A DNA stretch of 63,577 nt, counting the filler, from Ministeria vibrans ATCC 50519 (lineage: Eukaryota; Protista; Filasterea), in NCBI GenBank assembly GCA_943704425.1. It is 7 parts of 7 records of this genome, joined end to end, with 100 filler letters (N's around TTAATTAATTAA, not from the genome) between each part and the next. Parts side by side here need not be neighbours in the genome. Positions count along the whole stretch, not along the records: positions 1 to 30,322 come from CALSCP010002017.1; 6 more parts are not named here. One strand, 5' to 3'. Both the position numbers and the translations under genes were made by a program. Of the stretch, positions 1 to 44,014 are shown one piece after another (position 1 is the stretch's first letter; every line of letters starts with the position of its first letter). The notes beneath the pieces are model-generated. The model was given only the letters and a program-made list of their open reading frames with translations. It made no database searches and was not told the origin of the DNA.

Positions 1-630
1 TGGTCGGTGGCAGACGGGTCTCTCTTGCGCACTCTCACGGGTCACTCCAACGGCGTCCTGTCTGTCGCGTTCTCCCCCGACGGGCGCACATTGGCAAGCG
101 CATCCTACGACTACACCATCCGAGTGTGGTCGGTGGCAGACGGGTCTCTCTTGCGCACTCTCACGGGTCACTCCAGCAGCGTCGTGTCTGTCGCGTTCTC
201 CCCCGACGGGCGCACATTGGCAAGCGCATCCTACGACAACACCATCCGAGTGTGGTCGGTGGCAGACGGGTCTCTCTTGCGCACTCTCACGGGTCACTCC
301 AACGGCGTCCTGTCTGTCGCGTTCTCCCCCGACGGGCGCACATTGGCAAGCGCATCCTACGACAAGACCATCCGAGTGTGGTCGGTGGCAGACGGGTCTC
401 TCTTGCGCACTCTCACGGGTCACTCCAGCAGCGTCGTGTCTGTCGCGTTCTCCCCCGACGGGCGCACATTGGCAAGCGCATCCTACGACAAGACCATCCG
501 AGTGTGGTCGGTGGCAGACGGCTCTCTCTTGCGCACTCTCACGGGTCACACTGAATCCGTCGTGTCTGTCGCGTTCTCCCCCGACGGGCGCACATTGGCA
601 AGCGCATCCGGCGACAAGACCATCCGAGTG
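1..630 (+). repeat. Five near-identical 126-bp tandem repeats, each encoding one WD40 blade (array continues off the window)
   Basis: Units start at 1, 127, 253, 379 and 505 with tggtcggtggcagacgg; a sixth begins at 631 and then diverges. Confidence 0.97.
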
Positions 631-3600
631 TGGTCGGTGGCAGAGGGATTCTTGTTGGGTTCAGTGGAGACCTCACCGCTTGGCTGGATCACTGCTCTTG
701 TGAATGCCACACAAACATCCGAGAATGCATTTCTCGTTGAAATGGCCCTTGCTGTGTGGCCCAACCTCAACGAACTCTCCTTCACAAGTCTCACTTGCCC
801 TGTTCTCTGCAGCGACATTGCCAAAGTACTTCACCACTACAATAATTCCCTCCATCATATATCTCACCACGCCTTTTCCGCACCCTATTTAGCTACTCTC
901 CGCCCACCATGCTTTCGACACCTCCGCCATTTCCACGCTCCTTGCCTCCAATCTTGCCATTGGCACATCCGCCGCTGCCGTGGCTGCCCAGCGCAGCGAC
1001 TTGCCTCTCCTGAGCTTGCTTGTCTCAACCACCAAGATCCGCATTGACGACTCACTTCTCAACGTCGATTCGCCGTCTACCGAGTGCAAACAGTTCTTGC
1101 GCTCAATCAGCCAAAAGTACGCCACCTTGCCCGATCGCAGCACCATGTACCATCTCTCACTCGTCCCGTTTCTTTTCAGTGACGTTCCGCACTTTATTGC
1201 CCTTCTGCGCTCACGCAACCTCCAACGCATTGAGACACTGCTGGACACATACAACATGACGGATGTTACTGTTCCCGGCTCTGCGACTGAGCAACACGCC
1301 CTCCATCTGGCAGTGCAGCTCAATTCGGTCGACATCACCCGCATGCTTCTTGAGCGTGGTGCGTCGCCGAACGTGACTGACTCACACACGTGCACTCCAC
1401 TGATGCTTGCAGTCCGAGCTGGATCAAAGGATTTAGTGGAGTTGATGCTGTCCTACGGTGCGGACGGATCCATGGCCGATGATCAGGGAGTGACACCACT
1501 GTACACTGCGTGCGAGGCCAAAGGAACGGCGCTTGTCCAGTTGCTCGTGTCGTACGGCGCGGACACCAACGCGCCCAATGCAAGTGGAGTGACTCCTTTG
1601 CTCTGTGCGACCGAGACGAACGCCTTTCCCATTGTTGAACTGCTGCTTGCCCACCGTGCCAATCCCGATGCTGTACTACCAGACAGTGGCCACACTGCTC
1701 TTCATCGTGCCGTCAAACATGGTCACGTCGAAATCGCCAAAGCTCTCCTGGACGCCAACTGCAGTCTGACAGCAACCAATGCGGATGGCAACACCGCTCT
1801 CACACTCGCACGAAAGGCACCAAAAGGCTCGGGTGTGTTTGGGACACTGCGCAAGCTCAAGAACCATCATATGCACCAGCACCGCGAGGAGATTGCGACC
1901 GCTATTGAGAAGAGTACTGCATTGTTTGTATACATACCTTTTTGGTTCTGACCCATTTAATGTGTTGCATAGAGCGCGTCAACCCCACCACAACACCTCG
2001 CTTCACCGCCAAGGTCAACCCCCAGGTGCCCAAGTCTGTCAAACCCCGTCCACCTCAGACCCCCTTCGCCCCGTCCTCGTCCTCTTCCTCGACGCCACAC
2101 ACACCCTCGACACCGACCGGCCATGACTCGTCGACGCTCTTCCGCGAGACTCGCGTTCTTGGTGAGCACGAGACGCGCAACCGTGTGCTGCTGGTAGACC
2201 GACTTGCTCCGAGTGGACAGGTCCTCGACACTCTCGTGCTCAAGGTGTTTGAGAGCGAGGAGGCGCGCAACACAGAGCAGACTCATTTGGCGGAGCTGAA
2301 GAAGGTGAGCGTGCCGGTGGTGTCGCTGCTGGGATCGAGTGTGTACCAGGGCAAACCGTGTCTGGAGCTGGAGGCCGGCAAGCACAGTCTGGCCGAGTGG
2401 CTCACGGATGCACTCGAAGACGGCCACGACCGCCAGCTGGCAGTGCGCACACACCTTGGCACGGTGTACGAGCTGCTGACAAGCCTGCACACCAAGGGAG
2501 GGCGCATGCACGGCGACATCAAGCTGGACAACATCGTGGCGTTCGGTCGTGCGGGTACATCGTATCGCTTGATCGATTTTGGCACTGCGCGTGTGCTGGG
2601 TGAGTCTGTGTCCGACGAGTGGACTATCTCGTATGCACCTCCCGAGATTGCCGAGTGGCTGCTCGATCCGACGAGTCACAGTAGCGCGCCTGTTGCCACG
2701 AGTGCCATTGACATGTGGCAGTTTGGCGTGATGGCGTTCCATGCGGTGGCAGGCGAGCCACTGTTCTCGGGCAAAAAGAGCCGCGCGACAATGCTGCAGA
2801 CGATTGCTGCCTGGCCAGACCAGTGTGCAGGAAAGATTGAGGCGCGACTGCGTGCTGCGCGTGGCAAGCAGTCAATGGTGTCGACCGCAACGGACGAGTC
2901 GAAGGTGGCGCGATTGCTGAGCAAGTTCCTCGAACGCGACGCATGTGCGCGCGAGGCCATGACGGCACGACTGGGCGAGCATCCGCTGATGGGTGGTGTG
3001 GGTACAGGGCGCACGACGATGGCGATGATGGAGCGGAAGCTTGCCATGAGTGTGGAGAGTGCCCCGCTGCAGAGCGTAGTTCACCTGGAGAGTCTCTTGG
3101 AGACGCATTTGACGCGAGTGGAGCAGTTGGTTACGCGCGACGGAGAGGAGACACGACTGGCGCTGGAGGAGACGGAAGGACGCATGACGACGCAGATTCA
3201 GGCGACGCAGAAGCTGGTGATGGAGGTGGTGGATGCGAAGGAGCCGCGTCTGTTTGCACTCATACCGGCCGATGCAACCAACAAGTGGCGCGACTTTGGA
3301 GCGTGGGGCAAGACGACGTTTCAGCTGCACGCACTGTGTGAGTGCGGACCGCACTTTGTGGGTGGTGACGAGGGCGTGCGACTGCGTGTGCCCGGATCAG
3401 TGCTGCGCAAGATGCTTCCAGGACTCAAGGTGAGTGAGCAATGTATATGCAGTGAAAAGACGCCATCACCATGCATGGCGCTTTGTAGACACTCTTTACG
3501 TTGCTTTCTGCTGCGGCGCGGATTGCAGCGGCGTCGGCCGGACTGGGCGCATTCATTCCCGATGGGTGTGCGCTGCTGGACATGATTGCAGGCGGGGCAG

Positions 3601-3871
3601 AGATGATTAGCGGCATCATTGAGGGTAAACAAGAGGGGTGTTTGGGCTGAATCTAAGGCGGCGGCGGTGCGTAGGAATGGACGAGGCGATTGAGCGACAG
3701 CTGGACACCATGGACGCGGCTGAGCTGAGCACGCACCACGGCCACGCTCTGGGCGAGACCCTCACGGCACTGCGCGACCTCATGCGCGACAACGACGCTG
3801 ACTTTGCCGGTCTCCGTCAGCAGAAGCAGTCTGATGGCTCTATTCTGTGGGTTTGTTCCGCTCATTTTTGA
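1..3871 (+). CDS. 5'-truncated multidomain protein: WD40 repeats + ankyrin repeats + protein kinase + C-terminal CE..H / WVCxxH domain
   Basis: ORFs 7-1047, 980-1951, 1942-3585 and 3638-3871 join in frame via GT-AG introns 826-892, 1914-1972, 3430-3488 and 3625-3674. Motifs: WD40 (GHS..VxSVAFSPDG..LASAS.D.TIRVW), ankyrin (TPLMLA, TPLYTA, TALHRA), kinase (VLK, HGDIKLDN, DFG, YAPPE, DMWQFG). Stop TGA at 3869-3871. Confidence 0.85.
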
Positions 3872-4089
3872 CTTTTTGGTTTGTTTTTTTTTTGTTTTGC
3901 GTGAGTCAATTTCAACAATGAAAAATAGTTTTTTGAAAAGTATACATTCATCGATTGTATCCTCTCGTAGATGGATGTTATATCTAATATCACTCGTTAC
4001 ACATGTGAACCTAGATTCTAGAAGCCTTTCGAAACGTGTGAGAAATCACCAATTAACTTTTTAAAAAAAATCACTTTATTCATCAAACC

Positions 4090-4496: not shown

Positions 4497-4528
<32 letters not shown>

Positions 4529-7500
4529 AACAATAGGGACTTTGTGGAACTCGACGACGACAGTGTGCTGCAGGCATGGAACATTGTTCTTGGGGGCGTC
4601 CAGGCTGCGGCGGCGAGCATAGCAGCGGCGGCGACGGAGAGCATGGTCGCGTCGGAGCAGACGGAGTGGCGATCGGGCGCAAAGCAACTGTGTCTGCTCA
4701 TGACGTGGATGATGCAGACGGCCGAGTCGCAGGGTGCATGCCGCCGCACCCAGGCCGAGACCGCCGCTGCCGGCACCAAGAAGAAGAAGGCAACGACGGC
4801 GGCGGCAGCGGCGGTCTCGCGCGGCGTCGACTGGGACGCCCAGCTGGGACGCGCCCTGGCCATCCTCACGCAAATGCTCAATGCCAATCTCAGCCGCATC
4901 TGGAACATGGGCGTCGTCGACGAGGAGTTCTCCAATTTGTTCAGTCGCACCGCGAACCAGCTTCTGGAGGCGCCCTCCCACGTGCGCAACAAGACGACAC
5001 GCGATGCCATCTTCACCGTGCTTGCCACACTCGTCCAGCGCTACGGACACTCCATGTCGGTTGCTACGGCCACCATCCACATGCTGCCTCTCTTTGAGCA
5101 CCTTGCCTCGCCACTCGCACACCTTCTCTCTCGCTGCGCGAGCGCCCCGTTCAACGCGACCACCATCATTGGTGAGGTGGTGCGTGAGATTGGTCGTCTG
5201 CCCGCCGAGGACTTTAGCCGCGACACCACAGGCACGCGCAACATTGCCTCCTTCCTCACCGAACTCGCCGAGATCCAGCCCGCCCATATGCTTCCTTGCA
5301 TTCCTCACTTGCTTCCGCTGCTCGACGGCGACTCGTACGCCATGCGCAATGCACTCCTGGGTGTGCTCACCCAAGTGCTCAAGAACACACTCACGACCAA
5401 GGTCGACGACGACAACGACGAAGCCGACGACGACGACAAACAATCGACACAACAGCACACTGATGACGACACAGATGAACAAGAAGACAAGGAGGAGATG
5501 CGGCGCGAGCGGCGGGCAGCACGCGATGAGTTTCTGGCAGTGCTGTGCGAGCGAGTGCACGACTGCCATGCGTTTGTGCGCAGTCGCGTTCTCCAGCACT
5601 GGTACCAGCTGTGCGAGGCTCGTGCCATTCCGTTAACTCTCCAAAGCACCATTGTCGATCTCACCATTGGTCGTGTGCGCGACAAGTCCTCGGCAGTGCG
5701 CAAGAGTGCGCTGGCTCTCCTCACCGCCCTGATGGTGCACAACCCATACGGCGCCGAACTCAACGAGCGCACCTTTGAGCGTCTCTACACCGCCGAGACC
5801 ACTAAACTCGAGGAGATGGAGAAGAGTGCCAGCGAGTCTAGCGAGTCCAGCGACACCACTCCTGTGACGCCCGTCGAGGCACAAAAGATTGTCGTCAAGT
5901 ACTACAGCGACGCCCTTGAGTTTGCGCGTCGCCTCGACGGCACTGTCGCCGCCGTGTCCCAGCTGCTGGGCTCCAAGGTTGCCTCGGACGTGCTCGAGGC
6001 CATCGATTTTTTTGTGAGTGCGTCGCGTTTCAAGATCTCTTCGGCGCTGGTGGGTGTGCGCAAGATGCTTGTGCTGCTGTGGAGCAAAGAGCCGGCGATC
6101 AAGAGCGCTGCCATTGACGCATACCGCACGCTCTACTGTGCCGATGCCGAGGTCAAGGTTGCCAAGAACCTTATTGCGCTGACGATGGGTGCGTCGCTCA
6201 GTGAGCTCACGTCGCTCGAGGAGCTCGTGGCCAATCTCATTGACAAGGGAGACATTCAGCCGCCTGTCATTCGTCGTCTGTGGGACGTTGTGCTGCTCCG
6301 TGCCCAGAACACACAGCCGCAGCACGCACGGGCGGCCCTCATGATCATTGGCATGGCTGCAAGTGCCGACTCGGACATCATTGCGGGCTCCAACACGGCT
6401 GTGCTGGCTGAGACGGCCTTTGGCGAGCGCGGACGCAACGACCTGGCCTTTGCCCGCATTGCCTGCACTGTGCTGCAGAAGCTGGCACCGGCCAAGCGCG
6501 AACGAGGCTCTCTCGCGCCACCGCCCTCGCGCAAGAGCACCGACGACCCCCTCTTTGTGTCGCTCGAGCAGCTTGTGGTGGACACGGTGGCAAGCGACGG
6601 CAACGACGTATGGTTTGGTCTGGCCGAACAGGCCGTCGACACCGTCTACCGCCTTGCAGAGCACCCTGACCGTGTGTGTGGTCGTATCATTGCGCGCATC
6701 CACCAGGCTGTGTTGGGTGGCGACACGGCGACGGCGTGTCGTTCGACGCTTTTGGCACGCCTCCTCTTTATCGTGGGCCACGTTGCACTGAAGCAGCTTG
6801 TGCACTGCGAAGTGATCTCGGGCGAGCTCAAGCGCCGTCGGGCCGTGAAAGAGGCGATGCAGGGTGGCAAGAAGGCTGCGCAGCGCCAGAAGAAGGGCGG
6901 CGAGTCGTCAATTGAGGACGACATGGGCGTTGCGGCAGCGCAGGAGGACGCTGAGGCGGAGTACATTGCAAATGTGTGCGAGAACGAGTTGGTGACGGGT
7001 CGCGAGGGACTGCTTGCCATGTACGGTGAGCTTGTGGTTCATGTGTGCACACAACCCGAGGTGTACGCGTCGGCGACACTGCGGGCCTCGGCGACGCTGT
7101 GTCTGTGCAAGTTTATGACGGCAAGCGCACAGTACTGCGAGGCACATCTGCGTCTGCTCTTTACAGTGCTCCAGCGCGCGCGCGAGGCGACTATCCGCAG
7201 CAACATTGTCATTGCGCTGGGCGACCTGGCTTTCCGTTTTCCCAATCTGGTGGAGCCGTGGACGGGCCACGTGTACGCACGCCTGCGTGATGCAGACGTG
7301 GGGGTGCGCAAGAACACGCTTATGATGCTTACGCACCTTATCCTCAACGATATGATTAAGGTACGCGGCCAAATCAGTGCCATGGCCGTGTGTCTCGAGG
7401 ACCCCGACGCGCGCGTCGTTTCCATGGCGCGTCTGTTCTTCTTTGAGTTTGCGCGCAAGGGAAATGCCGTCTACAACATTCTGCCCGACGTGATTAGCCG

Positions 7501-8290
7501 CATGAGCCATGAAGAGCATGGTGTCGACGAGAACGCCTTCCGCCGCATCATTGGCTATCTGTTGGGCTTCATTCAGAAGGACCGCCAAAGTGAGGCGCTC
7601 ATTGAGAAGCTCTGCCATCGCTTCCGCGCATGCACGGCCTCCCGTCAGTGGCGCGACATTGCGTTTTGTCTGTCGCAGCTCACCTACCCCGACAAGTGCG
7701 TCAAAAAGCTCATTGACAACTTCTCGTGCTATCAGGACAAGCTGGGTGACGTCGATGTGTTTGCGGCGTTCACCTTGATCCTGGGCAAGGCACGCAAGCT
7801 GAGCAAGCCGGAGGGACGACTGGCGCTGGACGAGCTAGAGCAGCGCATTGCCAAGTGCCATGAGGAAGGCGCAGTGGCGCTGGCGAGCGAGGACAAGGCG
7901 GCTCGTGCACTTGCAAAGACATCGTCGTCGAAGCGCGAGCGCTTTATGGAGGTGGCGGCCGTGGCACGCGAGCAAGAGCGCGTCGAGATGGAGGCGCGCA
8001 AGGAGGAGGAGGAGGAGGCACGACGAGGGCGAGAGGAGGAGGAGAAGAGTGCGCTCAAGGCGGCGAAGAAGAAGGAAGCCGAGAAAAAGAAGAAGAAGAA
8101 GGCAGTGATGGTGGTGGAAGAGGAGGAGAGTGAGGATGAAGACTTTGTCGAGGACGACGACGAAGAGGTGGAGAACACGGTGCAAATTACGACGGTGACG
8201 GCCAAGAGCAAGGCGAGCAAGGCCAAGGAGACGACTAGTGGTGTGCGATCCAAGCCACGGGGTCGCGCAGCAACAGCCAAGGCCAAATAA
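4090..8290 (+). CDS. NCAPD2: Condensin I subunit 1 (CAP-D2/Cnd1/Ycs4)
   Basis: 1248-aa ORF with HEAT repeats and Cnd1 signatures (IRSNIVIALGDLAFRFPNLVEPWT, LTHLILNDMIKVRGQ, EKLCHRF). Three short upstream exons from ATG 4090 (MDEFNLP) joined by GT-AG introns. Confidence 0.95.
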
Positions 8291-8588: not shown

Positions 8589-9764
8589 TTAGGCGACTTT
8601 TGCAAGTGAGGTGTCGCCCGTCTTTGTGAGACGGATGACATCGGAGACCTCCTCCTTGGCAGCTGTCTCTTTGGTGCTCCCTTGCTCGTCCTCCTTCGTG
8701 TCCGTGGCGTCCATGCCAAAGACAGACCAGATCATCTTGATGGCACGCGATGCAAGCGAAGGGTCTTGCGTCTCAACCTTCTGGACCGTGGTCGTCGTCT
8801 TGGCGCTCGTTGTGCATGTGGTGGAGTCGGCACAGACCTCGGGTGCCTCTGATGCCCCACTCGAGAGCTTGGCCGGACCACTATCGGTGAGAACACCGCC
8901 CGCCTCAATGACTGACGACTCCATTTCGGGGCAGGCCACGCCCTGGATGCGCATGGCGGCCGCGACACAGAGGTGCACAAAAGCCTCAATGTTGGTGTTC
9001 TCCTTGGCCGACGTCACCATGTATCCGTCAAAGTTGTCCTGTCCTGCCAGCTGCACCTCCTCTTCCGTGACCGCGCGGTCCTTCTGGTCCCACGCCGTAG
9101 CCACGAGCAGCTGAGGCACTCGGTCGTAGTGACCTTCTTCGCGGACACGTGCATAGTTGCGTGGAACCGCGCCTTTCTTCTTGGATTTCTCCACCTTGGG
9201 CGTGCGCTTGCGTGCCTCGGCGCGCTCGCTCTCGCTCATGTTGGCAAGGACCATTTCTTGACCCTTCATAAACCCACTGAATCTCTTGATGGTGTACAGC
9301 GTCGACTCGAGGCCCCGGGTGTTCGACGGATCAAACGCATGCACTACAACGTCCGCCGAACGGAACGCCGAGTACTGCTCGAAGTGGTTGCTCATACGTC
9401 CACGCGAGCCGGGCACATCCGAAATGTTCACCTTGAGCGTCTTGTCACCGACCTTGACGCTCGTCGAGGCCGAAGAGGGAGCTGAACAGAAGCATAAAAA
9501 GAAACGAAAAGGTGGTTGAGCAACATGAGGGGCGTTTGGTGTGTCTCGTACTGGCGCGACTGCCCATCCAGAAGATGCCGCTCTCTTTCTTCTCCTCGAA
9601 GCTGGCGTTGCCGTCACATGCGCGCGTCAGCAGGGCAGTCTTGCCAATGCAGGAGGAGGAGGAGGAGGAGGAGGAGGAAGGAATGAGCAAACTTGACGTC
9701 AAATTGGACTCTTTCTGACTTACTTGGCACCGCCAACAATCGCAACGTTGATCTCGTCAAGCAT
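8589..9764 (-). CDS. Atypical Ras-superfamily small GTPase with long C-terminal extension
   Basis: Spliced product MLDEINVAIVGGANIGKT (G1), ...RAT (G2), ISDVPG (G3), VATAWD (divergent G4), TSAK (G5). No CAAX box. The first intron needs a non-AG acceptor. Confidence 0.7.
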
Positions 9765-13541: not shown

Positions 13542-15614
13542 ATGACAAGGTATGAGGAAAGTTGGCAAACAAACGACAAACACTCAAGGCCCATCCTCGC
13601 TCCAGCGCACGAGACATTGTCGTTGCTCAGTTGAAGGGTCCCCTTGACGAGCTTGATGCACTGTGGGACACGCTGGGACTCGCACATGAAGCGCGCGTTG
13701 AGAGTTTCGACAAGTACACGAAAAATTTCGTCACAGTTTTAACAAACTTTATCGCGGAAACGCACGAACAACTCTCTCGGTACGTGCATGCCCCCCTCGG
13801 TGACACTTACAATTCAAACTTATGTGACATGCTTCTGCGGCTGTAGCGACCAAGCGCTTGTCGACGCCAACATCAAACGCATCGAAGAGCTGCTTTTCGA
13901 GCTCGACGAGGGCCGTCTCGACTTTGACGTGTCCCTGTCCCTTGCCGCGCAAATCCGTCTGTCCCAAGCCAAGATTGAAGAGCTTGAGGCTCTCTTCGAC
14001 GAGCGCGAGCAAACTATCCTTGCCCTGGGCGAACAAGAACGTACGCAGCCAAATTCGATTTTTTCAAAATTATTTTGATCGTCCAAACTTTTGCAGAGAC
14101 CCTTCTTGAACGTCTTGGTCGCGAGGCTGTCGATGAGGATGCCGAACCCACACAGAGTTACATTACAGCACTGCGAGTCACCGTTCGCACTCTGGAGAAA
14201 GAAACCGACCAACGAGAGGTACAACACTCTGAAGGTGAATGAGTGTTTTATACTCGTATTTTATACTCGTATTTTCTAGACTGCGTTTGCTCCCGAAGTG
14301 ACCGACATCCGAAGAATGTTTTCGCTGCTGACACTCGAACCGCAAGACGGACTCGAAACAGAGGTAAGCCATATAGACAAAACAACACAACAATCACTGT
14401 ACAAACGTTTGATACAATCATAGGTGGTGGAAGGAACGTATCGATTGGACGAGACGACATTGAGCAGGGTTCAGGCTCTCCGGGAAACCCTTGCGGCATT
14501 GGTGGAGACGCGCCAGGCAGCAATTGACGACGGAAAAAGCGAAGTGCAGCGACTGTGGACCCGGATGCGGGTGAGTCAAGAGGAGCAGGAACGCTTCCTG
14601 GCTGCACTACCCAACGACCTTGGAGGGACAACCGGCGATGCATTGCTTGCGGAGCTGAATCGCATGACTCAGCTGCGCGACGAGCACATGGACAGTGCAA
14701 TTGCGGGGGCACGCGACGAGATCAAGGCCATGTGGGAGGCCATGTACTTTTCGGAGGAGCAGACCAAGGGGTGCGAGGCATACTGGTGCGAGGAGGACAA
14801 CAGCGAAGGGCTGCTGGACACGCTCGAGTTGGAGATTGCACGTCTGCAAGAGATGTACAGCGAAAACAAGGCGTTGTACACTCTTGTGGCCGAGCGCAAG
14901 CGGTGCTTTGCGACGCTCAAGCACCTCGACAGTGCCCCGTCGGCCGGCCGTTTCACCAATCGCGGCGGCTCATTGCTCCAGGAAGAGAAACAGCGCCGCC
15001 AATTGGCCATATCACTGCCGCGCCTCAACACCAAGATCTTGTCGGCACTCGACGAGTACGAGCACCGCAACTGCCAGACACTGCTCATCGACGGCACACC
15101 CTACCGCACAACACTGCAACACGAGCAGGACACATGCGACCTCTTCCTGCGTCGCCACGCGCCGGGTTCCGCCGCCGCTGCAGCAGCAGCAGCAGCAGCC
15201 TCCGCCTCCCTCATGAGCACTAGTTCAGCATCCGCCTCCACATCCTCCATGCGCACCCCCCACAAAAAACAACACAGCCTGCAGCAGACCAAGACACCCA
15301 TTCGTGCCACACCACTGCGTTCGCACACCCCCAAAGCCCAGACAAACACCTCCTCAGCGACTCCGCAATTCCATCCCACCCCCAAAGTCAAGCAACAACC
15401 GCCCGCCCCGCTCCCATCCTCTGCCTCCCCCCATTTCCCCCACCTCTTCAGCGCACCTTCCTCCAAACCCCCGCGCCACTCTCTGCTCGAGTTCAAGTCA
15501 CTCGAGACAGATGTCGATCAGGACCTCAGTCTGCGCTCTGTCGGTTCCTACACTGACTTTGAGACGGGAATCATTACTGCACATGCAAAGCGGAGCTCCG
15601 CCATTCGCGAGTAG
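13542..15614 (+). CDS. PRC1: PRC1/Ase1/MAP65 microtubule-bundling protein
   Basis: Coiled-coil exons with LDALWDTLG, QRLWTRM, KAMWEAMYFSEEQ and the hallmark RFTNRGGSLLQEEKQR; Ser/Thr-Pro-rich tail. Start exon inferred. Confidence 0.88.
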
Positions 15615-21567: not shown

Positions 21568-21715
21568 AAATTGTTCATCAAGTTTGGGGTTTATCGTGGA
21601 TTTCGAATAAACACGATGCACTGTAGATCCACTGAATTTTGAAGACACGCAAAATAATTATTATAAGGTTAGTTACTTAGTTGTTTTGTTTCAGACTTCT
21701 TTGTCTTTCTTTCCA

Positions 21716-28405
<6,690 letters not shown>

Positions 28406-28509
28406 ACAAAAACTAATGCAATAATAATATAATAATAATACTGCTGCAGCGTTTTGAGTAAGTCGCTCCTGTAGTGCATTGTAATACAATAAATTTGATC
28501 TGTTCCATC

Positions 28510-30174
28510 TCAGACAGTCGGCTGATCGGCCAACGGAACACTCGACTACACACAACAAAAATGAAGGGTCGATCTTATTATTTTCTATTCGATTGTTCGA
28601 TACCTTGACAAGAGTGATGGCGGCGAGTTCCTTTGAGAATTCTTCAATGACAATGGTTGCGTGGAGAAGACGCTGTTCGGCAGTTGAGAGGAGATCCTGG
28701 TCGGGCGACAGGCCCAGCTGTTGCTGTTGCTGTTGCTGGTGTTGTGGGGAGGTGGTGTCTTGGGGTGGGGCGAGCAGGAGTCGTTGGTCGATGAGGTGCT
28801 CGAGAAGGCGAGGGATGCGCTTGAGGGAGGGACCTTGGAGGTCGGAGTGAAGGTGGGAGAGGATGCGGAAGGGAGTGCGAACGGAGGCGGGAAGAGGCAA
28901 GTTGGGTTCGAGGAAGAATCGGTGGAGAAGAGGGTCGGCGTAGAGGGCGAAGCGTGAGAGGATGGACGTGACAAGTAGATTGATCTCATAGGGTTCGTCA
29001 AGGCAGCGCTCGAGGGTATTAAAGAGGGCCGTGAGGAAGGGGCCCTCGTTAAATGGTTCGGGTTCGGCGTCCGAGAGCAGTGGGGGTGCAGGCGGAGAGG
29101 GGAACGTGGGAGCATGGCAGAGAGCGTCGTAGACACGGTCGTGCGCGTCGGCAACGTACGGGTCATAGCCAATGTCACCGCACTTCCACGCACACTTGAG
29201 GGTCTCGGGGACTACTGAGAGGTAAAGATTGACGGTGGTGGCTGCAGCAGTGGTGTACTGGGCATCCAAGGGCTGTACCAGCGCAGGCACAGCAGCCAGA
29301 TAGTCACGCACCAGCATAGAGAGACACAGAGACGAGTGGCGCGACACAAGCGTGTCAAAGAGACGCAACACTGCTTCGCGCAAATGCGTCTCGGCCGCCT
29401 CACTGCGCGCCAACAGCGACTCAAATACCCCATAGCACACAAACCGGACAAACACATCCACAAGCTTTGCATTGCGCACTCGTCCGCTCATCACTGTTAC
29501 CAAAAGAACAGCTTCATGCGCGCCTTAAAAACCAGAGAAAGAAAACGAAAAAAAAGAGGAGTGCGTGAGCAAGTTTGAAAGTGAGTGTGATTGTTACTGA
29601 CCTGCCTCTGACACTTGAATGATTCCCGCACGAACAACTGTGTCCAAAAACGACTCACGAAGAACTGTTAGAAACTGTAAAACGAAAAAGGTCAAAGAAA
29701 AAACAAAGAAACAGAAAGAGAGAGAGGAGAGAGAGGAGAGAGAAAGAACAGAGCAATAGCGAGAGAGAGAGAGTGTGTGTGTGTGTGGATACGTGATCGA
29801 CAAAGAGCGGATGTGCATAGGATGCAAGTTCATCACAGTAATCGAGAACAGAGAGGAATGTCAGAACGGGCTGAAGACGATGTAAGCGCGACGCAGGAGC
29901 TATAGGACAAAATAGAAACCATAAATGAGAGAACGCAAAAACAGAGACATTGCTTGACTGGCGGACCTTCTTTTCTCTTTCCTGGAGTAGAACTGGAGCG
30001 TTTTGGGGTAAGCGCGACATCAGATGTGAGCAAGGTAAGATCGGTCTTCTCGATGCGCATTGGAATTGCGTCGTAGAGACGAGTAAGACGCGCGACAATC
30101 AGATGACTGACGGCTGTGTCTCGTGCAAAGGCAGCCACAGTCGCGGTTTGCAGCGATGCCAGTCGAAGAATTTC
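28510..30174 (-). CDS. FTS- and Hook-interacting protein (FHIP/FAM160 family), 5'-truncated by contig end
   Basis: EGPFLTALFNTLERCLDEPYEINLLVTSILSRFA, FLSVLDYCDEL, IVIEEFSKELAAI match FAM160/RAI16-like conserved blocks; multi-exon. Confidence 0.85.
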
Positions 30175-31051: not shown

Positions 31052-32911
<1,860 letters not shown>

Positions 32912-33109
32912 TTAATATTATTATTGATTGTTATTCTTCTATTGATTATTATTCTTTTCTTTTATTATTATTAATTTTTTTCTTATTTCTAACGATTAAC
33001 ATTATTGCGTCATGTTTTAACTTATTATCTTGACAAATATGGCAATAAGATGAGATAACACTGACTTTCATTAAACGCTAAATAATAAAGAAAACAAACA
33101 AAAAAAGGC

Positions 33110-36100
33110 TCACTTGAGCTTCCGCACATCAAACACCCCGAAATGGCCATCAAAGCCAACCACAAGTCGATTGATGCCGGCGGGCGCAATGCTCTGCACC
33201 GGAGCCGCAAACTCAACGGTCTTCATCGTTTGTGCACTCCCGTACAGCGGCAAAACGTGCAACCGGCACGTGCCCTTCTGGTTGGTTACTATGCGCAGCG
33301 ACGTCTTCGCAAAATCTTCCACGCCCGACTTCTTACTTTCTGCCGCCTGATCATTGGACAGGCTGAGGCGCTTCGATGAGTCGGTCTTGCGCAAAGGAGC
33401 TCGTCCTCCGCCGCCAACGGAGCTTGCACGTCTCGGCGACGAGTTCGCCGAGGGTGGGAGCGACGCGGAACGTCTCGGCGACGAGTTCGCCAAGGGTGGG
33501 AGCGACGCGGAACGTCTCGGCGACGAGTTCGCCGAGGGTGGGAGCGACGCGGAATCCACTTCTGAGCCGTTGAAGCTTCGTCGACTGCGCGGTTCATCAC
33601 TGGCTTCCGCCATCAATGCCACTGGTGAGGACGCCGTCGACTCAAACACGTTCTTGTTCTCCGTCACAGAGCCGAGCCACATGACCGCCACACACGTCGC
33701 CTGCACGGGCACCACACACGTTTCACTGTGTATGGGTGTATCGGGACTTGGCAGGCGCCACAGTCGCACGTCGCCACTCTCGTCCAGTGTCCACGGAGCT
33801 CCACGTCCGCCCAGCCATAGTCCACACACGGGGCTTACATGCCCAACCATCTCGACAAACAGCTCCAACGAGGCAGAGTCGTCCCTCTCTTCCTCCCCCT
33901 CCTCCTCCTCCTCCCTCAGGTCCCTGAGAACTCGCACGGGCGGTAAAGTCCACGCGCGAATGACTGTGTCAAAGCCAAAATAAAGTCGATGGCCCAGCGA
34001 GTCATCGTTCTCAGAGTAAATGGCAGCAACCCGCACATCTTTGAGTTTCTTCACATCACCAAACATCGCGACGCGCTTCCACGTATTGTTCAGACGCCAC
34101 ACTGAGACACTTGGGTCGCCGGAGCTGCAGGTGACTGCAACAGTCCCATCGGATGCAAGCGCAACCACATCAACCGCGTCATTATGCTTCTCCATCTGCT
34201 GCATTGTGTCAAAGCCCGACTCTAGTGGGGAAGAAGACCATAAAATCGCTTGCCCGTCCTTTGAGCCGGTGAGGACATGGTCGCCAGTTTCGTCGAGAGC
34301 CAGAGACAAGACCGAGCTGGACGGTTCAATATTCGCCAGTAATTGACCCGATTCGATGTCCCAGAGCTCCACACGGCCAGAAGCGTATCCAATAGCCAAA
34401 CGCTGGCCGTTTCCGCTGACGACAATATTGAGGACATTCTTGCGCCGAACGGCAGCCTCTCGCAACCTTGACACATCGGGCAAAAACCAGACTCGTGTCG
34501 CACCATCTGTCGTCCCGGCAACCACTTGCACCAGACCATCTTCCTCTCCAGAGTCAGCGCCAGTAGTGAGTGCCACGCTTGTGACCGACGCATCATTCCC
34601 AAGCAACATTCCCAACTGACGCTCGGTCGACGACGCCGCATCCCACACACGCAAGAGTCTCTCTCCACAGCCCGTCACCGCCAGAGATCGGTCTGTCGAG
34701 AGAGCAACGGCTTTTGCCGCACACGACGTCTGCCCAACACCCAGTCCCACGTCCGACTCATCCTCGACCTGAACCACACCACCCTGCGCATCGAGAGACA
34801 GACGCCACACCGCCAGCTTGTCTGCTCCGCCCATGGCAAAAAGTTCGAGGTATCCATCGTAGAGATCTGGCAGCCTCAAGGACACAAAAGTTGTCAGCGT
34901 TGCCCAGCTTTGCTTTTGGCGAACCACTTGCGATCGATCCAAGTCCACTGCCATGTTCGAGTCAGAGTCTCCCGACATGTCACTCTTCACCTCCCACACG
35001 CGCACTTCGCCATTGACAGAGGCACTTGCGACATGTAATTTGGGCAGCTTGAGAAGGTCCAATGTTTGAATGACCGACACACTCGACACGGTGTCGCAAT
35101 GGCCCTCGAGCACCACCGCCGGGGCACCGTCTTTCCATACCCACACGCTCTCGTCTTGTGACCCAGACACCACAAATGATGCGTCCACGGAGGGCGACGC
35201 AAGAGCACGAACTGCCTTGGTGTGCAACTTCGCCGCCTCTCCACGGGACGTGCCGTCGGTGGTGCTCCACCAACGGACCGTCGAGTCACTCGCGCCAGTC
35301 ACAATTGTGTCGTTAAACTCGTTATCGGACGTGATTATCAGAGCATGGATGGGATTTCCAACGGTAGGGTCGCGGCCCATCGCAAGAATGTCTGACCGCC
35401 ACACCAGCGTGCCATCGTCACCAGATACATCCCACCAACAGAGAACGCCGTCTGCACCACCTGTAACAATGTACATGCCATCCGTTGACACGGCCACAGA
35501 CGTGACACCGCCGACATGAGCCGAGTCCAACACCATCTCAGCCCGCCGATTAGACTCGTGTGCAAGAAAAGAACACTTCCATGACGCCGAAGGCTCGAGG
35601 TAGGGCCCGCTCATACTGTTTTTGAGGCTATCGGTTGCTGACTGTAGAAGACTGACCACAAAATCGTTTTTCTCAGCGCCGAGGTGGCCCTGCAAAAATA
35701 GAGTCAGGGAACGGTCGCTGAACGCAGTGGATGTCTCGTAGCCAAGCGCCAAGACGTCACGAACCATTCGCAGTGCGGCAAGCTTGGTGGATAAATCAGA
35801 GTGTTGCGGACGCGAGATCAACATCGTCAGATGACGCACAGCAGCGGCGTAGTCGCGAAGGACTGCACTTGACACATTTCCCTTTGTGCGTCCATCGGCG
35901 ACGCGTGACCAGATCCACCTGAACGACAACAGTAGGTCGCACATTTTGACTGTCTCGCCTGCACCCGCCATCTGCTCAATCAGGTGTTCAAGCAGAAATT
36001 CCGTTTCTGCATTTCGCGGCAGATCGCACCAGCTGCTGTTACTCTTCTTTCCATACGAATCATTCCATACGGAAAAGACGATACGGTGTTGCTTAGCACG

Positions 36101-38880
36101 CTCCTCCACCGTATTAGCTTTTGTCTCGACGTCGATGTAGTCAAACTGGACAGCGTGCATGGTGACCCAGTCGCCATCCCCGTCCGACTGCTGCAGCAGA
36201 GAGCCGTTGACAAGACGTTGAAGGGTGGTCGCACCAATGTTGTCTATGACATGTTGCGTGCCAATAGTTTCTTTTGACTGTGATGCTTCCCTGACCAAAT
36301 GCCGTTGTTTCTTTGTCCACATCTTCACAATCGTGTTGGAGGGAATTTGAGCGCCCTTTCCAAAAACAACCAAGTCTTTGTAGCAGGATGTGACAAACTT
36401 CAGTTCATCCATGGGGTCCTCCATGGCGTCGAGGCTCATCTTGGTTGCCTGAAAGGGCGTCAATGGAATGTTGGTCGAGGACGATTCGAAATCCCAATTC
36501 GGTAGCGCCTGGCGGACGTTCTCAAATACGGCGCTCCATCCCTCTCGCGTCGCCGCCGTATGGGCAAGTATGCCACCAACCAGGGCAATTGCCAAGGGCA
36601 AGCCGCCGCACATGTCGACAATTTTACCAGCACAGTCGGGAACAAAGCCATGTCGTGTCGTGTCCCACGACGCATGTTTGCACAGCATCTCGAGCGCCAG
36701 CTCCCGCGGAAGTGTCTCAAGCGCCAGGCGACTCGAGTCATCGTGAGCAACCCGTCGATGGCGTGTTGTCACCAAGACACGACAGCCCGGTGCCTGCTGG
36801 CAAACATCATAGAGAGCAGCGGTAAATCCAGTTTGCATCTCCCAGACGTCATCGAGTACAATGAGGACGTGACGTGTCCCGATCTGCTGAGCGAGCGATT
36901 GAACAGCTTTTTCAATCGGATTGTCGAGGCCGTTCAAGTCAATGCCAGTACCGCCAAAAGATTGCTCCAGGAGCACCAGAGTGCTTTCCACTGAGCGCGT
37001 TGATTGCTGTCCAATGGCGACCCAACGAACTCGGTCGCCAAATGCCAGCTGAAATTGCTTGTCGTGCACTACACCGCGTGCCAGCATTGTTTTGCCAAGA
37101 CCACCTTCGCCGACAAGAGTGTACATGGGAACAGCGCCTGAAGCTAAAGCGTCGTTGCCGAGAAGAAACCTCCGTATCCGCTGCAGATCTTTCTGGCGTG
37201 AGACATAGGAGCGCGGTAAGCTTGGAGGCCAGAAGTGCAATGCAGCGCTGGAGAGGCGATCGCCGCCGCTACACTCAGACAGCCGCTCGCTGAGTGCCTT
37301 CAAGCGAAACTGACGGGAGTCTGTTGCACTGTCACTGGGAATTTCGAGCTCGCTGCAAATATCGCGGAGAGCGTCCAGAAGATTTTTCGCCTCCACGGGG
37401 TCGAATTTTGACGCGTCTTTGGCCAGAAACTTGCGTGCGGCCTCAAAGGAAGCGTACACGAGGGGGGCACACATGTCGTTGAAGGCGTACTTGCGCGCGA
37501 GGAAGGTCTCCTGCAACAAGTTTGCCTCAACCAGAATCTCGGCAAGCAAGTCGTTGTCCGTCGATTCAAGAGCGGACCGGGAGACTTCTGGGGAGTACGA
37601 CTTGCGGAAGAACAGGTACTCGCCCTTGTTCTTGTCAAAGCCGGGCACTTTGACACGACCGTACGAGCACACTTGCGAGAGAATTTCGCTCTGGGGCGGA
37701 ACTGAGTTGTACAGTTTCAAGAGCTCTCCCAGACCTTCGCGCATGGCTATCGCCAGCATTGGGGCAGTCACCCAGTTGGCGGGCGCCGACGCCCCTCGCT
37801 GTACCATTTTGAAGACGGATCCATCACGCCAGGCCTGTTCAAATGCCATTTGCAAGAAGGTACCATTCGTAATGCTCCACGACGATGCCTTGAGGTTGGT
37901 GCCGGTGATGACTTGAAAGCAGGGACAGAGGACGCGCTCGAGGAACGACTCGGAGAGCTCCGAGCCAAACAAGGGCCAGGCTGGCGTGACCTTGTCGAGA
38001 TGGTCGCTCAAGATCGCTGCACCGGCCTTGCAGGCGTCAATAATCACCAATACCTGACCCCAACGCTGCTGCTCGGGATCGGTGACGCCGAGAATGTTGG
38101 CGAGGAGGCTGAGCGAGAAGAGCTGTGACCACTGTCCTGTGTGCGGATCCGCTTTGGCCTCTCCGAAAATCATGCCAAACTCAGGGGTACCGGCAGGAGT
38201 GGCAGTGGTGGCGGTCTCGCCATGGCCCACAAGGTACACGAGGAGCTGGTCGTGCGGGGTGACGGCGTGGCCGGGAGCTTGGTGAATGAGATCGACGACT
38301 GCTTGTTCGACGTTGGCCGTTGCGATCGACTCACAGACCGTCCACTGCTCGCTGGGCGACATCTGCTGCGGCTGCGACACGTCCGACAGCACGTGGACAA
38401 TGTAGCCCATCTCGGCAAGCGTGTGCGACAGCGAGGCGGTCGCTGCGGCAACTCCATCGAGATTGTCGAGCGACGCCTGGTCGGCGTAACGCGCGCGTCC
38501 GATGACAAGCGCTAGCTTGCAGTGGTGTATGTGTAGGTGTATCTGTGATCTGGCGCCCGTGTCGTCGCCAACAGCGGGCAGTTGTTCCGGTTGAGAGTCT
38601 GTCACAAAAATAGTGAAAAAAAAAAATAAGCGAAGTTTACTTTACGGAGAGTGACGCAAAAACAACATTCAAGACGCGTACCGGGGACGTGACTGGCACC
38701 AGGCTCGCTGTTTTCGGGAGGGGGTGTGCTTGAGGTGTCGTCGTTGTCGCGTGGCGTGTTCGTTGGTGTGTGTTGGGCTGCGGATGAAATCCAAGCGAGA
38801 AATTTCAACAGAGATGCCAGAGAGGCAATCACGAAGATCCAGACCGACGCTTGTGATGGTCCAGATGGGGCGCTTGGCAT
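33110..38880 (-). CDS. Caspase-like (peptidase C14) + NB-ARC + WD40 STAND protein, Apaf-1-like, with N-terminal hydrophobic segment
   Basis: Exon 1 (38880-38682) joins a 5.5-kb exon via phase-1 GT-AG intron 38599-38681. Motifs: LALVIG, YLVGHG (His), IIDAC (Cys); Walker A GEGGLGKT, Walker B LIVLDDVW, VLVTTR, GGLPLA, MHAVQ; helical domain LLLSFRWI; multiple WD40 repeats. Confidence 0.9.
33428..33553 (-). repeat. Three 42-bp coding tandem repeats (SASLPP[S/L]ANSSPRR)
   Basis: Unit acgtctcggcgacgagttcgcc[g/a]agggtgggagcgacgcgga x3. Confidence 0.95.
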
Positions 38881-39022
38881 GGTAGGATGCGGCTTATTGG
38901 AAGATTGAGAAATGGATTGAAAATAAATTCTAATATTGTTTATTATTTGTTTTTTGTTGTAAGGTTTGCATTTTATTTAAGTCATAGAGAAAAAAGGGAA
39001 AGAGAGACAAAATAGCGACTGA

Positions 39023-39219
39023 TCAGATGTGAGAAGCGCCCGTTGTGTCGAGCATTCCGTCCTGAATGTTTCCCTTGCTAAAGTCCGTTAGTGGCTTTTT
39101 GCCTGTGAGACGTTCGTGTTCTTCGGGAGTGCGCCACAAAGTGTGAGGGATGAGCCATTTGTAGACGACTGAGAGGAAAGAGGCAGGAGGGGGATTAGAG
39201 ATGTGGGGAAAAGTGAGCG

Positions 39220-39317
<98 letters not shown>

Positions 39318-39493
39318 TGTGTGTGTGTGTGTGTGATAGAGAGTGTGTGTGATAGAGAGACAAAGTGATAGAGAGACAAAGTGATAGAGAGACAAAGTGA
39401 TAGAGAGACAAAGTGATAGAGAGACAAAGTGATAGAGAGACAAAGTGATAGAGAGACAAAGTGATAGAGAGACAAAGTGATAGAGAGACAAAG

Positions 39494-39581
<88 letters not shown>

Positions 39582-42046
39582 GAAAAATGTACCAAAAGTG
39601 TAGATGATGGAAAGAAGCATTAGAAGACCGATAAAGGCAAAAGTGTCGCGAGGCCCAAAGGCATCGTAGATGGCGGTGACAAAGATGGGACCGATGGTGC
39701 GGGCGCCCGAGCCACAGGCGGTGAGAAGGCCCATGCCAAAGCCCTGGGGCGCGGGACCCAGCACCTTACTGTAGATGGAGAACATCATGACGGACGACAT
39801 GGGGTAGCCAATGCCAATGAGCGCACTGCCCGCAATGAACTGGCCGAGCGGCAGAAGCGGCTGTGTCTCGCACCAGTGCGGTTCTGATGTGTTCGAGTTT
39901 GCATCGCCCAGTGCAACTGTGAGGGGCGACAGAGGAACGTAAAGGGCATACGCCTCTGACGAGATGTTGGTTTGGTTCGTCACAATAGGAGAGTGACATG
40001 CCATCTGGTTGAGTGACAAAGAGTGTGGGTAAGTACGTGAGTGAGTAAAGCAAGTTACAGTTCGAATAATAAACGTACATGACCCGGACCAAAGGGCAGG
40101 TAGACGACAAAGCCAAGGAAGCAGAAGAAGAGGCCCCAGATAAGAAGAGGGCGCTCGCCCCATTTGCGCGAGGCAGGTTTGATGCCCATGAAGACAAAAA
40201 CGGCGAGGATGCCCGAGACGCCGTAGAGGATGCCGTTGAACAGATCCTGTTGTTGGCCCGTCCACCCGTACTCATCACCCGTCAGCGGTGTGCCAATCCT
40301 GTTGGAGAGAGTGATAGTAAGTGAGTGAGTGACTGAGAGTAAGGGTGTGTATGTGTATGTGTGTGTGACTGAGAGTAAGCGTGTGTATGTGTATGTGTGT
40401 GTGTGTGTGACTGAGTCACTGCGTATGTGTGTGCGTGTGTATGAATTGGTGAAAATGAAGCGGAGTGCCCTTACGTTTCGTAGACAGAGAAGACAAATAG
40501 AATGATGGTGAAGATGATGAGAGAGGACAGTGCAGCAAACTTGTCATATGCTTTTGCTTCGGGTGAGAGTTCCGTTTCCTGTTTACTCTCTCCTCCTTCG
40601 AGTTGAGCAATCTATGAATGGAATGCGTCAGAGAAGGTGAGGGGAGGGATCACGAGTCTTGACCTTGTGTTCGCGGAAAAAGACAAAGACACAAATGAGA
40701 TTGATGAGGCCGAGCACAGCGGAGATCCAACCAGGGCCCGTCAGGAAGTCAAGAACAAAGGGACCCGAGTGAATACCCGGCTTGAGCGACGTAAAGGCCG
40801 AGCCCATAGCGGGTCCCACAATAAAACCCAGGCCTTGTGCGGCGCTCATGTTTGCCATGGCGGCTGTGCGTTCCGTCACACGCGTCGCTGTCGCAACGTA
40901 TGCGCGACACACGGCGACATTGCCTGCGCCCAGACCCACCAAGATGCGGGCCACTAGCATGAAGTACTCGGCGTTGCTGCCGTTGAATGATCCCGCAAAG
41001 CAGTACATCACATTGCCTGCAAAGAATGAATGTTTCACGATCATGACATGCGTAGGGTGCAGAGCAAAGAATTGTGTGTGTGTGTGTGTGTGTACCGCCA
41101 ATGGTGAAGAAAAGTGTGATAATCAATGGTTCCATGTACGGACGGTAGTTAGACCAGACGCCAAAGACGGGCGATCCAATGAGCTGACCCAGCGAGTAGG
41201 ATGACACAATCCAGCCAAGGAAGGTCTTTGTGCCGCCAAGACTCTGAAGGTAAGGCCACAGAGTCGACAGCACAATCGAGAAGCCTACAAGTGTATTGTG
41301 TTTGTGTTTTAGTGAGTGGGAGTGAGTGAATAACAGCAAAAGGCAAAGGGTGCTCCAGAGCTGCTGTGCCTCCTTCGTACCGACACTGGAGAGGAAGGTG
41401 GTGAGGTACATGACGCGGATGGAGTTCCAGCGACTCTTGTAGTCTGCGTCGCTCTCTTTGGCCACTTCCAGCGGCTCTGAGTTGGGGTGGTCTTCGCCGT
41501 CGCCGCCACCGCCAGTGCCCAGCAGCGACTGGCTTTCCTCGATCGTGCTGATGGGATCGCTGTACTTGCGCCCGCGTACCGACGATTCTTCGCCGTACGT
41601 TCGGCTCTGCCAGCTCGCTCCAAACTTCTCCTCTGTGTCGTTGTACGCGTCCAACGGCGATCTTCGGCGCTTGTCCCATTGACCGCCACGTCTACACAAA
41701 GCGTCACGACGACACCGCGTCAGCAGACAAGGCTGTGCAAAAGTATATTCTTTCTCTTTTCACTCCATTTTTTTTTTTTTTTTTTTTTTGAAAAACGCCT
41801 TTTTTTTGGTGTCGCGAGATTTTGAGCGAATATGTGATTCTGAGCAAGAGATGGGTGTGGTACAGGTGTTCTAAGACATTCTGAATGCCGGAGAGCGGCG
41901 GGAAGGAGCGCGCAGGGGCTTTGGGGGACGATCATATGTTAAAGGATGTCTTACCCATAAGGTGAATCGTCATTGGCGCTGCTTAAGCTGCTGACTCCCG
42001 CATCGTGCGTGACGCCCGTGGTGGCGAGAGCGTCTTTGATACTCAT
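39023..42046 (-). CDS. MFSD8: Major facilitator superfamily transporter, MFSD8/CLN7-like
   Basis: SIRVMYLTTFLSSVGFSIV..LWPYL, SYSLGQLIGSP, ARILVGLGAGNVAVCRAY, IYSKVLGPAPQG, GSGARTIGP. First exon from ATG 42046 splices in phase 2. Confidence 0.88.
39223..39575. repeat. Intronic (GA)n/(GT)n microsatellite enclosing a 16-bp minisatellite (GAGAGACAAAGTGATA)x~9
   Basis: Direct reading; perfect 16-bp units at ~39352-39500. Confidence 0.95.
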
Positions 42047-42332
42047 AGCGAGAAAAAAATGATGAGAAATGAGTTGGGCTGCTGATCAGTCAGTGATCAT
42101 ACAATGTCCAACTCATCCCATTGTCAGTCCACATTTCAACTTTCGAAGCTGGGCTGTCGAGATCACTCAAATGAGTTAGATGAGAGATTTGATCAGGAAA
42201 AGGGTTGCAGGGATCTGGGACAGGATCAGGTTTGTCTGTCTTTAGTGCTCAATTTTTTCAAAAGGTTTCCAACCAAATTTCGATCAGAAACTAGAAAAAA
42301 ATCAATTCAATTTTACTTTTTAGCGCCTTAAA

Positions 42333-43303: not shown

Positions 43304-44014
43304 TTGTAACATTCTTCAGTGTACGTAATTTAGACGGTGATTGTTTTTTTTTGTATTCATGATTGACACAAAGTATAATATTATTGAGTCCTGATCATTA
43401 TTATAATGGAATAATTATAGCAAATACTAATATTTTATTATTGTTATTATATAATTATTCACTATATCTACTCCAAGCGCCCTCAGTACTCCGAAATCTT
43501 TGTGATTGCCAAGGCAATTCATCAGACAATTCAGACCATCAAGGGCAATAAGTCGCAGTTTTAGATACTGATCACAGCGCGTGAACGTACTTGCAGGCGG
43601 AAATACCAATGAGCATGGGCTCTTGCTGGACCGCCTTTACTCTGCGCTGAGATCTCTGTAGCCTGACGGACGGCACACTCTCTCCCCAGATTTTCAAATG
43701 CTCAATGCTGCACTCCCAAGAGGTCCACCACCGCTGCACCACTCCCGCCCACCAAATTAAACAGCGACATTCTCTCGCCGACGACCGCGTCTTCCGGGTT
43801 TCCTCCCAGGCCAAACTGGTTCGATCGCGAGCAGACTCTGTCCTACGCAGATTTCTTGCCCCAAATTAAAGTACACTGCACCGACGACTTTATAGTAACT
43901 TCCTCGCCAGTTCTTTCCTATATATAAATACCGTTTGTTTTTATTCAGTTATTTCTCTCCCACTCTCGCTTTCTCTCTCTCCTCTCTCGTGGACTCTCCT
44001 TTGGCGTCAAACTC

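Follow-up and report, generated by a model that had tools for sequence, protein, structure and literature searches.

The window, which is placed on its scaffold at G000:C2017:48251-78628, opens with a gene in which four modules are predicted to follow one another: a tandem array of WD40 units, ankyrin repeats, a protein kinase, and a C-terminal module that matches no Pfam family (Table 1). Several conventional genes lie downstream of it, and a run of 30 A's at 4498-4527 stands just before the condensin frame. The plus-strand region 21686-27718, which holds a 1,573-aa LRR-rich frame, an (ATAATA)n tract of 560 bp at 25722-26281, and then a transmembrane-like segment with a tyrosine-kinase frame, looks like an LRR receptor tyrosine kinase. 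No resemblance to human or viral DNA was found. The host is non-fungal, as the earlier note on this DNA had supposed, and probably a holozoan protist: the best matches of the condensin protein are from Metazoa and Capsaspora (37-41% identity), with no fungal protein among its 32 matches, and the genome gives 28 SH2 matches vs. only 2 Zn2Cys6 matches and no light-harvesting proteins; the LRR and tyrosine-kinase frames of the window point the same way.

Table 1. Features of the array gene and its neighbours (positions in the window), and of related loci elsewhere in the genome (contig named)
Feature	Position	Strand	Basis
Five near-identical WD40 units of 126 bp, frame 1	1-630	+	Tandem Repeats Finder, translation, Pfam, AlphaFold2
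Degenerate propeller end (last strand d, possibly closing strand a) and linker to predicted donor	631-825	+	frame 1 open
Predicted intron 1, 67 nt, GTACTT...TTTAG, phase 0, frame 1 to frame 2	826-892	+	sequence reading
Exon: helical linker and ankyrin repeats, frame 2	893-1913	+	Pfam Ank 4e-35, Ank_2 7e-35
Predicted intron 2, 59 nt, GTACTG...ATAG, phase 1, frame 2 to frame 1	1914-1972	+	sequence reading
Exon: low-complexity linker, kinase, start of C-terminal module (~2992-3429)	1973-3429	+	Pfam Pkinase
Small exons and introns of C-terminal module, internal boundaries approximate	3430-3871	+	donor GTGAGT at 3430, stop TGA at 3869-3871
Condensin subunit 1 (Cnd1)	4544-8290	+	
Weak Ras-like frame	8589-9617	-	
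MAP65/ASE1 protein	14424-15614	+	
DUF5917/KELAA protein	28397-29503	-	
WD40-Roc-caspase copies	G000:C1080:~37600-43500 (L034, L035); G000:C1443:~31200-37000 (L033, L036)	-	nucleotide matches
WD40-Roc-caspase, further contigs	C1507, C2659, C1887, C1799, C1564, C2424		
WD40-Roc-caspase, more than 30 contigs of 100-850 bp	including C2204, C1718, C1114, C407, C268		
NACHT loci	G000:C2623:9070-12906	+	
NACHT loci	G000:C138:20228-23245	-	
NACHT loci	C716, C2290, C2192, others		

Tandem Repeats Finder reports a single array at 1-644 (period 126, 5.1 copies, 96% matches, no indels), and Pfam recognizes WD40 in it with an E value of 2e-74 over five matched stretches. Each unit encodes 42 amino acids. 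The frame 1 translation returns exactly the variable residues that the earlier note had listed: SNG-L, SSS-V, SNG-L, SSS-V, and TES-V after the GH of units 1-5, and YDY, YDN, YDK, YDK, and GDK around the conserved Asp. Pairs of units differ at 1-12 of 126 nucleotides (90-99% identity) and at 1 to 6 of 42 residues, all of them predicted hotspot or loop sites; units 1-4 are separated by only five single-base changes, and unit 5 supplies most of the divergence.

Variation in the array is strikingly confined. Only 13 of the 126 columns vary among the five units, and 12 of these 13 lie within codons 16, 17, 18, 20, 36, and 38. The one other column shows a GGG/GGC third-position change in unit 5, which is synonymous, so that the remaining 36 codons contain this one synonymous change and no amino-acid change. 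In the six hot codons 12 of 18 columns vary vs. 1 of 108 elsewhere (Fisher p = 1e-11); pN is 0.38 in the hot codons and 0 in the other 36, while pS is 0.108 and 0.013, respectively. The earlier note had claimed homogenisation at the DNA level together with hypervariability at a few surface codons, and had named an even spread of the differences, with dN/dS well below 1, among the observations that would count against it; both the low silent divergence outside the hot codons and the clustering within them bear the claim out, and we regard the repeat pattern as real and beyond chance. When codons 17-20 are scored by type and codon 38 as K or non-K, all four combinations are present, a distribution that fits recombination between the sites and might also reflect recurrent mutation. 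Adenine-targeted mutagenesis of the kind driven by diversity-generating retroelements (DGR) was considered and rejected, as the substitution types are mixed and there is no template copy elsewhere in the genome.

The positions of the hot codons are those known from the HNWD genes of Podospora anserina. Paoletti et al. (2007) described four strongly selected codons in HET-E-type units, two of them (7 and 9) on either side of the conserved codon 8 and two (25 and 27) on either side of the conserved codon 26; the d-a loop holds one of these pairs and the b-c turn the second, and both places are at the top of the propeller. In the units described here, codons 18 and 20 flank the invariant Val19 and, 18 codons further on, codons 36 and 38 flank the invariant Asp37. 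With the register fixed by this conserved Val/Asp spacing and by the strands of an AlphaFold2 model, codons 18, 20, 36, and 38 correspond to codons 7, 9, 25, and 27 of Paoletti et al. Later work sorts HNWD repeats by positions 10, 11, 12, 14, 30, 32, and 39, and our six variable codons are six of these seven positions (chance probability 1.3e-6); the seventh, codon 3 in our numbering, is invariant, and no amino-acid change falls outside the HNWD set. The earlier note had pointed to just this coincidence with the HET-E/HET-D hypervariable positions, and the comparison upholds it.

The AlphaFold2 model covers window 1-825 with a mean pLDDT of 80.9 and values above 90 over the repeats, and shows four strands per unit (a, 19-24; b, 30-35; c, 40-44; d, 50-54). 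On this model the d-a loop contains codons 16-18 and the b-c turn contains codons 36 and 38; codon 20 lies where strand a begins. By the established topology of WD40 domains, the d-a loop and the b-c turn form the ligand-binding top face. The propeller fades after unit 5: 78 of the next 126 bases differ from that unit, and the model of the degenerate end contains a strand at 218-223, after which the pLDDT drops below 50.

The array begins at the edge of a scaffold gap of 2,020 N (G000:C2017:46231-48250) and is therefore incomplete. A whole-genome DNA search found the unit at one other site only, the last 209 bases of a 3,280-bp contig, C2271. To the left of the gap the sequence runs out in a CT-rich repeat, and C2271 opens with (CT)54; moreover, the Noc2 profile of Pfam is matched at positions 10-71 left of the gap and at positions 78-127, 135-205, and 223-291 on C2271. 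Because of the shared CT repeat and the Noc2 gene that runs across, we place C2271 in the gap, where it carries the missing 5′ end of the WD40 gene. Its WD40 frame starts with an ATG directly after a stop codon and continues with 45 residues resembling strands b-d of a blade, followed by a full unit (TEW-E after GH, YDK at the Asp) and an SSS-V unit cut by the contig end. From codon 11 onward the first of these units equals the consensus in DNA save for codons 16, 17, 18, and 20. Counted over both contigs, the gene thus comprises at least seven homogenised units and a split closing blade, i.e. eight or more blades; it is these seven units of a single genome that our unit comparison covers overall. 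The earlier note had proposed inspecting the upstream sequence for a NACHT domain. There is none: the 1.5 kb between the Noc2 stop and the WD40 ATG on C2271 contains no NACHT, P-loop, or long frame, and the Pfam matches of the gene are limited to WD40, Ank, and Pkinase.

Ament-Velasquez et al. (2025) showed that units can go missing from arrays of this kind, or be added to them, when they are assembled from Illumina reads. As the assembler failed at this array, which adjoins the gap, the number and order of the units are unreliable, and the shuffled combinations put forward in the earlier note depend on the order of units in an array that the assembler did not close. The unit types themselves are probably real because the variable codons span about 70 nt, which should lie within a typical short read, provided that the assembly was made from short reads. 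Elsewhere in this assembly gap edges can be duplicated: an apparent 126-bp tandem repeat at L035 6738-6989 (G000:C1080) is the same stretch of about 40 residues on both sides of a short N run, that is, a scaffolding artefact.

Downstream of the propeller, both predicted GT-AG introns join the frames exactly; their GTAC donors resemble those in Noc2 and other genes of this genome, in which GTAA donors also occur. Pfam searches were run exon by exon rather than on the joined protein. The ankyrin exon shows in addition a weak ANK_LRRK2 match (1.4e-6), and the Pkinase match (E = 1e-16) extends over profile positions 30-255 with readable kinase motifs (VLK with the beta3 Lys, HGDIKLDN, DFG, and PPE) and a degenerate glycine-rich loop. 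The domain is probably of the Ser/Thr type, and its activity is predicted at most. The C-terminal module is common to paralogues and to the proteins P0003, P0033, and P0130, and the last exon aligns with the C-terminus of P0130, a stand-alone homologue; an AlphaFold2 model of the module from a six-sequence alignment (pLDDT 48.8) was too poor to use. The locus may instead hold a pair of genes, one for a WD40 protein with its end at 1047 and one for an ankyrin-kinase protein that begins near 1150, given that the joined model is read from the sequence and its exon junctions are predicted. We favour the fused gene because a paralogue on contig C524 has WD40 blades before the same kinase and module.

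That paralogue (G000:C524:9280-13150, plus strand; L042 4280-8148) and a second one (G000:C578:516-2765, plus strand; L045) share the kinase and module at 34-36% identity. In the C524 copy, ordinary intron-separated WD40 blades and long (TAT)n-type tracts precede them. On the minus strand of a third contig (G000:C2679:2550-8058; L043), a 1,465-aa frame encodes LRR, Roc, COR-A, and COR-B followed by the C-terminal module (74% identity), and no kinase domain is seen between COR-B and the module. More distant relatives include P0003, which combines a Kelch propeller with kinase and module. None of these loci shares the unit at the DNA level; the best multi-blade protein match in the genome is 39-40% identical to the WD40 part, and no further 126-bp array was present in 23 candidate loci. 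The unit is thus confined to one locus, so that exchange of repeats among paralogues, a feature of the HNWD genes, does not take place here.

A second genotype comes from a metagenome scaffold of 1,566 bp (L016; ENA ERZ23497041, scaffold_15765, sample SAMN09406010) that is 99.5% identical to window 2438-4003. Five of the 8 mismatches in 1,566 nt lie in the kinase exon, and all five are synonymous; five synonymous exonic SNPs out of five in an independent scaffold indicate that the exon is coding and under constraint, and that another genotype occurs in nature. From these 5 synonymous SNPs in about 990 nt we estimate a silent difference of about 2% between the two genotypes in the kinase exon. 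Searches for closer or allelic copies gave little. Two exact-match scans of JGI metagenome contigs, one with the unit core and one with the unique 3′ flank, were empty; a word-based protein search retrieved no near-identical WD40 fragment, only relatives of 36-66% identity, and for the kinase exon nothing beyond the window's own protein; and an exhaustive search of 1.84 billion representative proteins contained no orthologue of the kinase exon, its best non-self match being 33% identical.

The genome also holds a second WD40 gene family, with at least eight larger loci and many tiny contigs, whose copies are 73-100% identical in nucleotides and which fragments the assembly. Its members are laid out as seven WD40 blades, one exon each, followed by a Roc-like GTPase with P-loop and DFAG motifs (nearest Atlas clusters Roc, score 0.91), a middle region of about 670 aa that belongs to no known family, and a Peptidase_C14 caspase with the His/Cys dyad; PDB sequence searches with pieces of these proteins were blank. 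Among 41 blade copies of the family, the most variable positions are Asp-1, GH+5, and Asp+1, and extra residue types average 8.0 at the seven HNWD-type positions vs. 1.26 at the others (Mann-Whitney p = 1e-4). NACHT domains give 13 matches in the genome, several in very long open frames of up to 2,991 aa; the loci on C2623 and C138 match WD40 too, and scans of the NACHT loci on C716, C2290, C2623, and C2192 detected no 126-bp tandem array, so that NACHT-WD40 genes are present here but with repeats that are not homogenised. This family and the NACHT context would make an immune-like reading of the array gene more plausible.

The array resembles the HNWD genes of P. anserina (het-e, het-d, het-r) in its 126-bp WD40 units that are near-identical in DNA, and in hypervariability at six of the seven classification positions, among them the four codons under strong selection that lie next to the Val and the Asp in the d-a loop and b-c turn; the identity among its units falls within the 80-100% found between units of one HNWD gene. 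It differs from HNWD proteins, which are NACHT-WD40 NLRs, in that the gene has no NACHT, HET, or other N-terminal death domain; that its WD40 array is N-terminal and partnered with ankyrin repeats and a kinase; and that it is a single locus without paralogue exchange, in a non-fungal host and without RIP. The gene is not an NLR, and the description "HET-E-type non-self recognition domain" may be kept as a working analogy only; the diversity-generating role that the earlier note inferred is likewise putative.

Hu et al. (2017) defined a Highly-Repetitive class of WD40 proteins (internal identity above 0.7), found in bacteria (50%) and fungi (36%), and reported that WD40 proteins of recent origin and high internal identity occur in prokaryotes, protists, and fungi alike, noting that hotspot sites are diverse. 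The present array belongs to this class by its internal identity, with most sites conserved, and by the diversity of its predicted interaction hotspots. Repetitive WD40 proteins with variable hotspots are thus already known in bacteria, fungi, and protists, and the phenomenon is not new for protists; the survey by Hu et al. was made at the protein level, and neither the architecture seen here nor the homogenisation at the DNA level is described there.

Two further groups of proteins invite comparison. Bacterial PkwA-type proteins likewise couple a Ser/Thr kinase to a highly repetitive WD40 propeller of the SPDG type, whereas in our gene the WD40 part comes first and the order is reversed, ankyrin repeats lie in between, the introns are eukaryotic, and the C-terminal module is common to eukaryotic proteins. 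ROCO/LRRK-type kinases share the set of ankyrin, kinase, and WD40 domains, to which the ANK_LRRK2 match and the close similarity of the C-terminal module to the one that follows the LRR-Roc-COR-A-COR-B protein on C2679 can be added; unlike in these kinases, the Roc-COR tandem is absent from every exon in Pfam searches, and the WD40 part is N-terminal rather than C-terminal. From its sequence, the gene looks like a Roc-less relative of the organism's ROCO kinases.

Our data suggest how such an array came about. At silent sites the units (1.3% apart) are as alike as two strains of the species (~2%). Because the silent difference between units is within the range between genotypes, the backbone has been homogenised or duplicated very recently: the array was either amplified in the recent past or kept homogeneous by unequal crossing-over and gene conversion, as judged from its sequence, and both candidates stand because no orthologue is available for comparison. 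The hot codons behave differently, as they differ by up to three bases between units. Relaxed constraint is insufficient to explain them, given the roughly 29-fold excess of replacement differences in the hot codons (0.38) over silent differences elsewhere (0.013); selection for different residues in different blades has to be assumed, whether or not conversion still goes on. The reading of the array as homogenised, with variation selected at the top face, is well supported.

Taken together, these results are best explained by a sensor kinase with a WD40 propeller of near-identical units whose top-face residues are under selection and whose partner binding controls the output, a reading of the whole that we hold to be probable with moderate confidence. 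The protein would be the product of a single intron-poor gene, a cytoplasmic sensor kinase with an N-terminal WD40 beta-propeller of at least seven near-identical units and a split closing blade, followed by ankyrin repeats, a Ser/Thr-type kinase, and the conserved unnamed module, with neither NACHT nor Roc. Selection would favour different residues per blade at the six positions; the propeller would bind a partner through its top face, and binding would control the kinase and the C-terminal module. The partner could be foreign, could come from another individual of the species, or could be an ordinary cellular protein.

It is possible, if rather doubtful, that the gene carries a young propeller for one ordinary cellular partner, built by a recent burst of unit duplication and then fitted by directional selection of the blade contacts to a fixed self ligand, with no continuing diversification. 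The low silent difference between units relative to that between strains agrees with such an origin, as does the paralogue on C524 with its ordinary intron-split WD40 region before the same kinase, and Hu et al. (2017) read highly repetitive WD40 proteins as very young, with hotspots adapting to partners. However, both the first and the last unit depart from the others by 2-3 bases in each hot codon although the flanking DNA is identical, a pattern that simple recent duplication hardly accounts for without very strong selection or an exchange of tracts.

Somewhat less probable, and in our view unlikely, is an innate-immune or allorecognition receptor in the sense of HET-E, in which the array would recombine into new blade combinations, alleles would vary in their number of units and in their hot-spot residues, and recognition of a ligand, whether foreign or allogeneic, would trigger the kinase and module as a defence or death signal. 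The six variable positions shared with HNWD repeats, the occurrence of all four codon 17-20/codon 38 combinations that recombination would be expected to produce, and the genome's NACHT matches and expanded WD40-Roc-caspase family, whose variation falls at the same positions of the blade, speak in its favour, but the gene has no NACHT or other oligomerising NTPase, the unit exists at a single locus, the two metagenome scans and the word search gave no fragment of an allelic array, and variable hotspots are general to highly repetitive WD40 proteins, from which immunity need not follow (Hu et al., 2017).

We consider it very unlikely that the WD40 module was gained from bacteria by horizontal transfer. 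The database proteins closest to the WD40 part come from cyanobacteria, actinobacteria, and Chloroflexota, with 55-66% identity, well above the best multi-blade match in the organism's own genome; yet single blades of the WD40-Roc-caspase family (C268, C1443) match the unit just as closely, at 60-62% identity, and consensus-like repeats match one another across lineages. Transfer is not required, since the genome's own single blades are equally similar, and the spliceosomal introns downstream and a GC content like that of the surroundings also argue against it. An assembly artefact, in which the array or the order of its variants would stem from a mis-assembled, collapsed repeat, is highly improbable: the array does begin exactly at the gap, the contig that fills the gap is longer than the gap estimate, the assembly contains a duplication around a small N run elsewhere (L035), and Illumina assemblies of such repeats are unreliable (Ament-Velasquez et al., 2025), but errors would not strike only six functionally meaningful codons and keep the frame open, typical short reads should cover the variable codons, and two independent contigs end in the same unit.

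Repeats with high internal conservation and hypervariable contact residues are the route by which fungal NLRs reach new specificities; most documented cases are from fungi and from bacteria that are filamentous or multicellular. In the present gene the DNA-level signature of fungal NLRs, at the same blade positions, appears in a non-fungal, probably holozoan protist and on a protein without a NOD, which suggests that the repeat mechanism does not depend on the NLR chassis and is able to serve a kinase output. Given that the array broke the assembly, short-read genomes of protists are likely to contain more genes of this kind than have been counted. Along with the WD40-Roc-caspase family, the gene provides a concrete set of candidates for variable intracellular receptors in unicellular relatives of animals.

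In conclusion, we tentatively raise a broader proposal, which we rate as unlikely at present: that a unicellular relative of animals uses propellers with selectable top faces as a variable receptor repertoire in two ways, through a NOD-less, kinase-coupled array homogenised by recombination and through a many-copy WD40-Roc-caspase family diversified between paralogues. If true, fungal-style diversification by concerted evolution and caspase-linked sensing would have arisen outside fungi and animals, independently or earlier.
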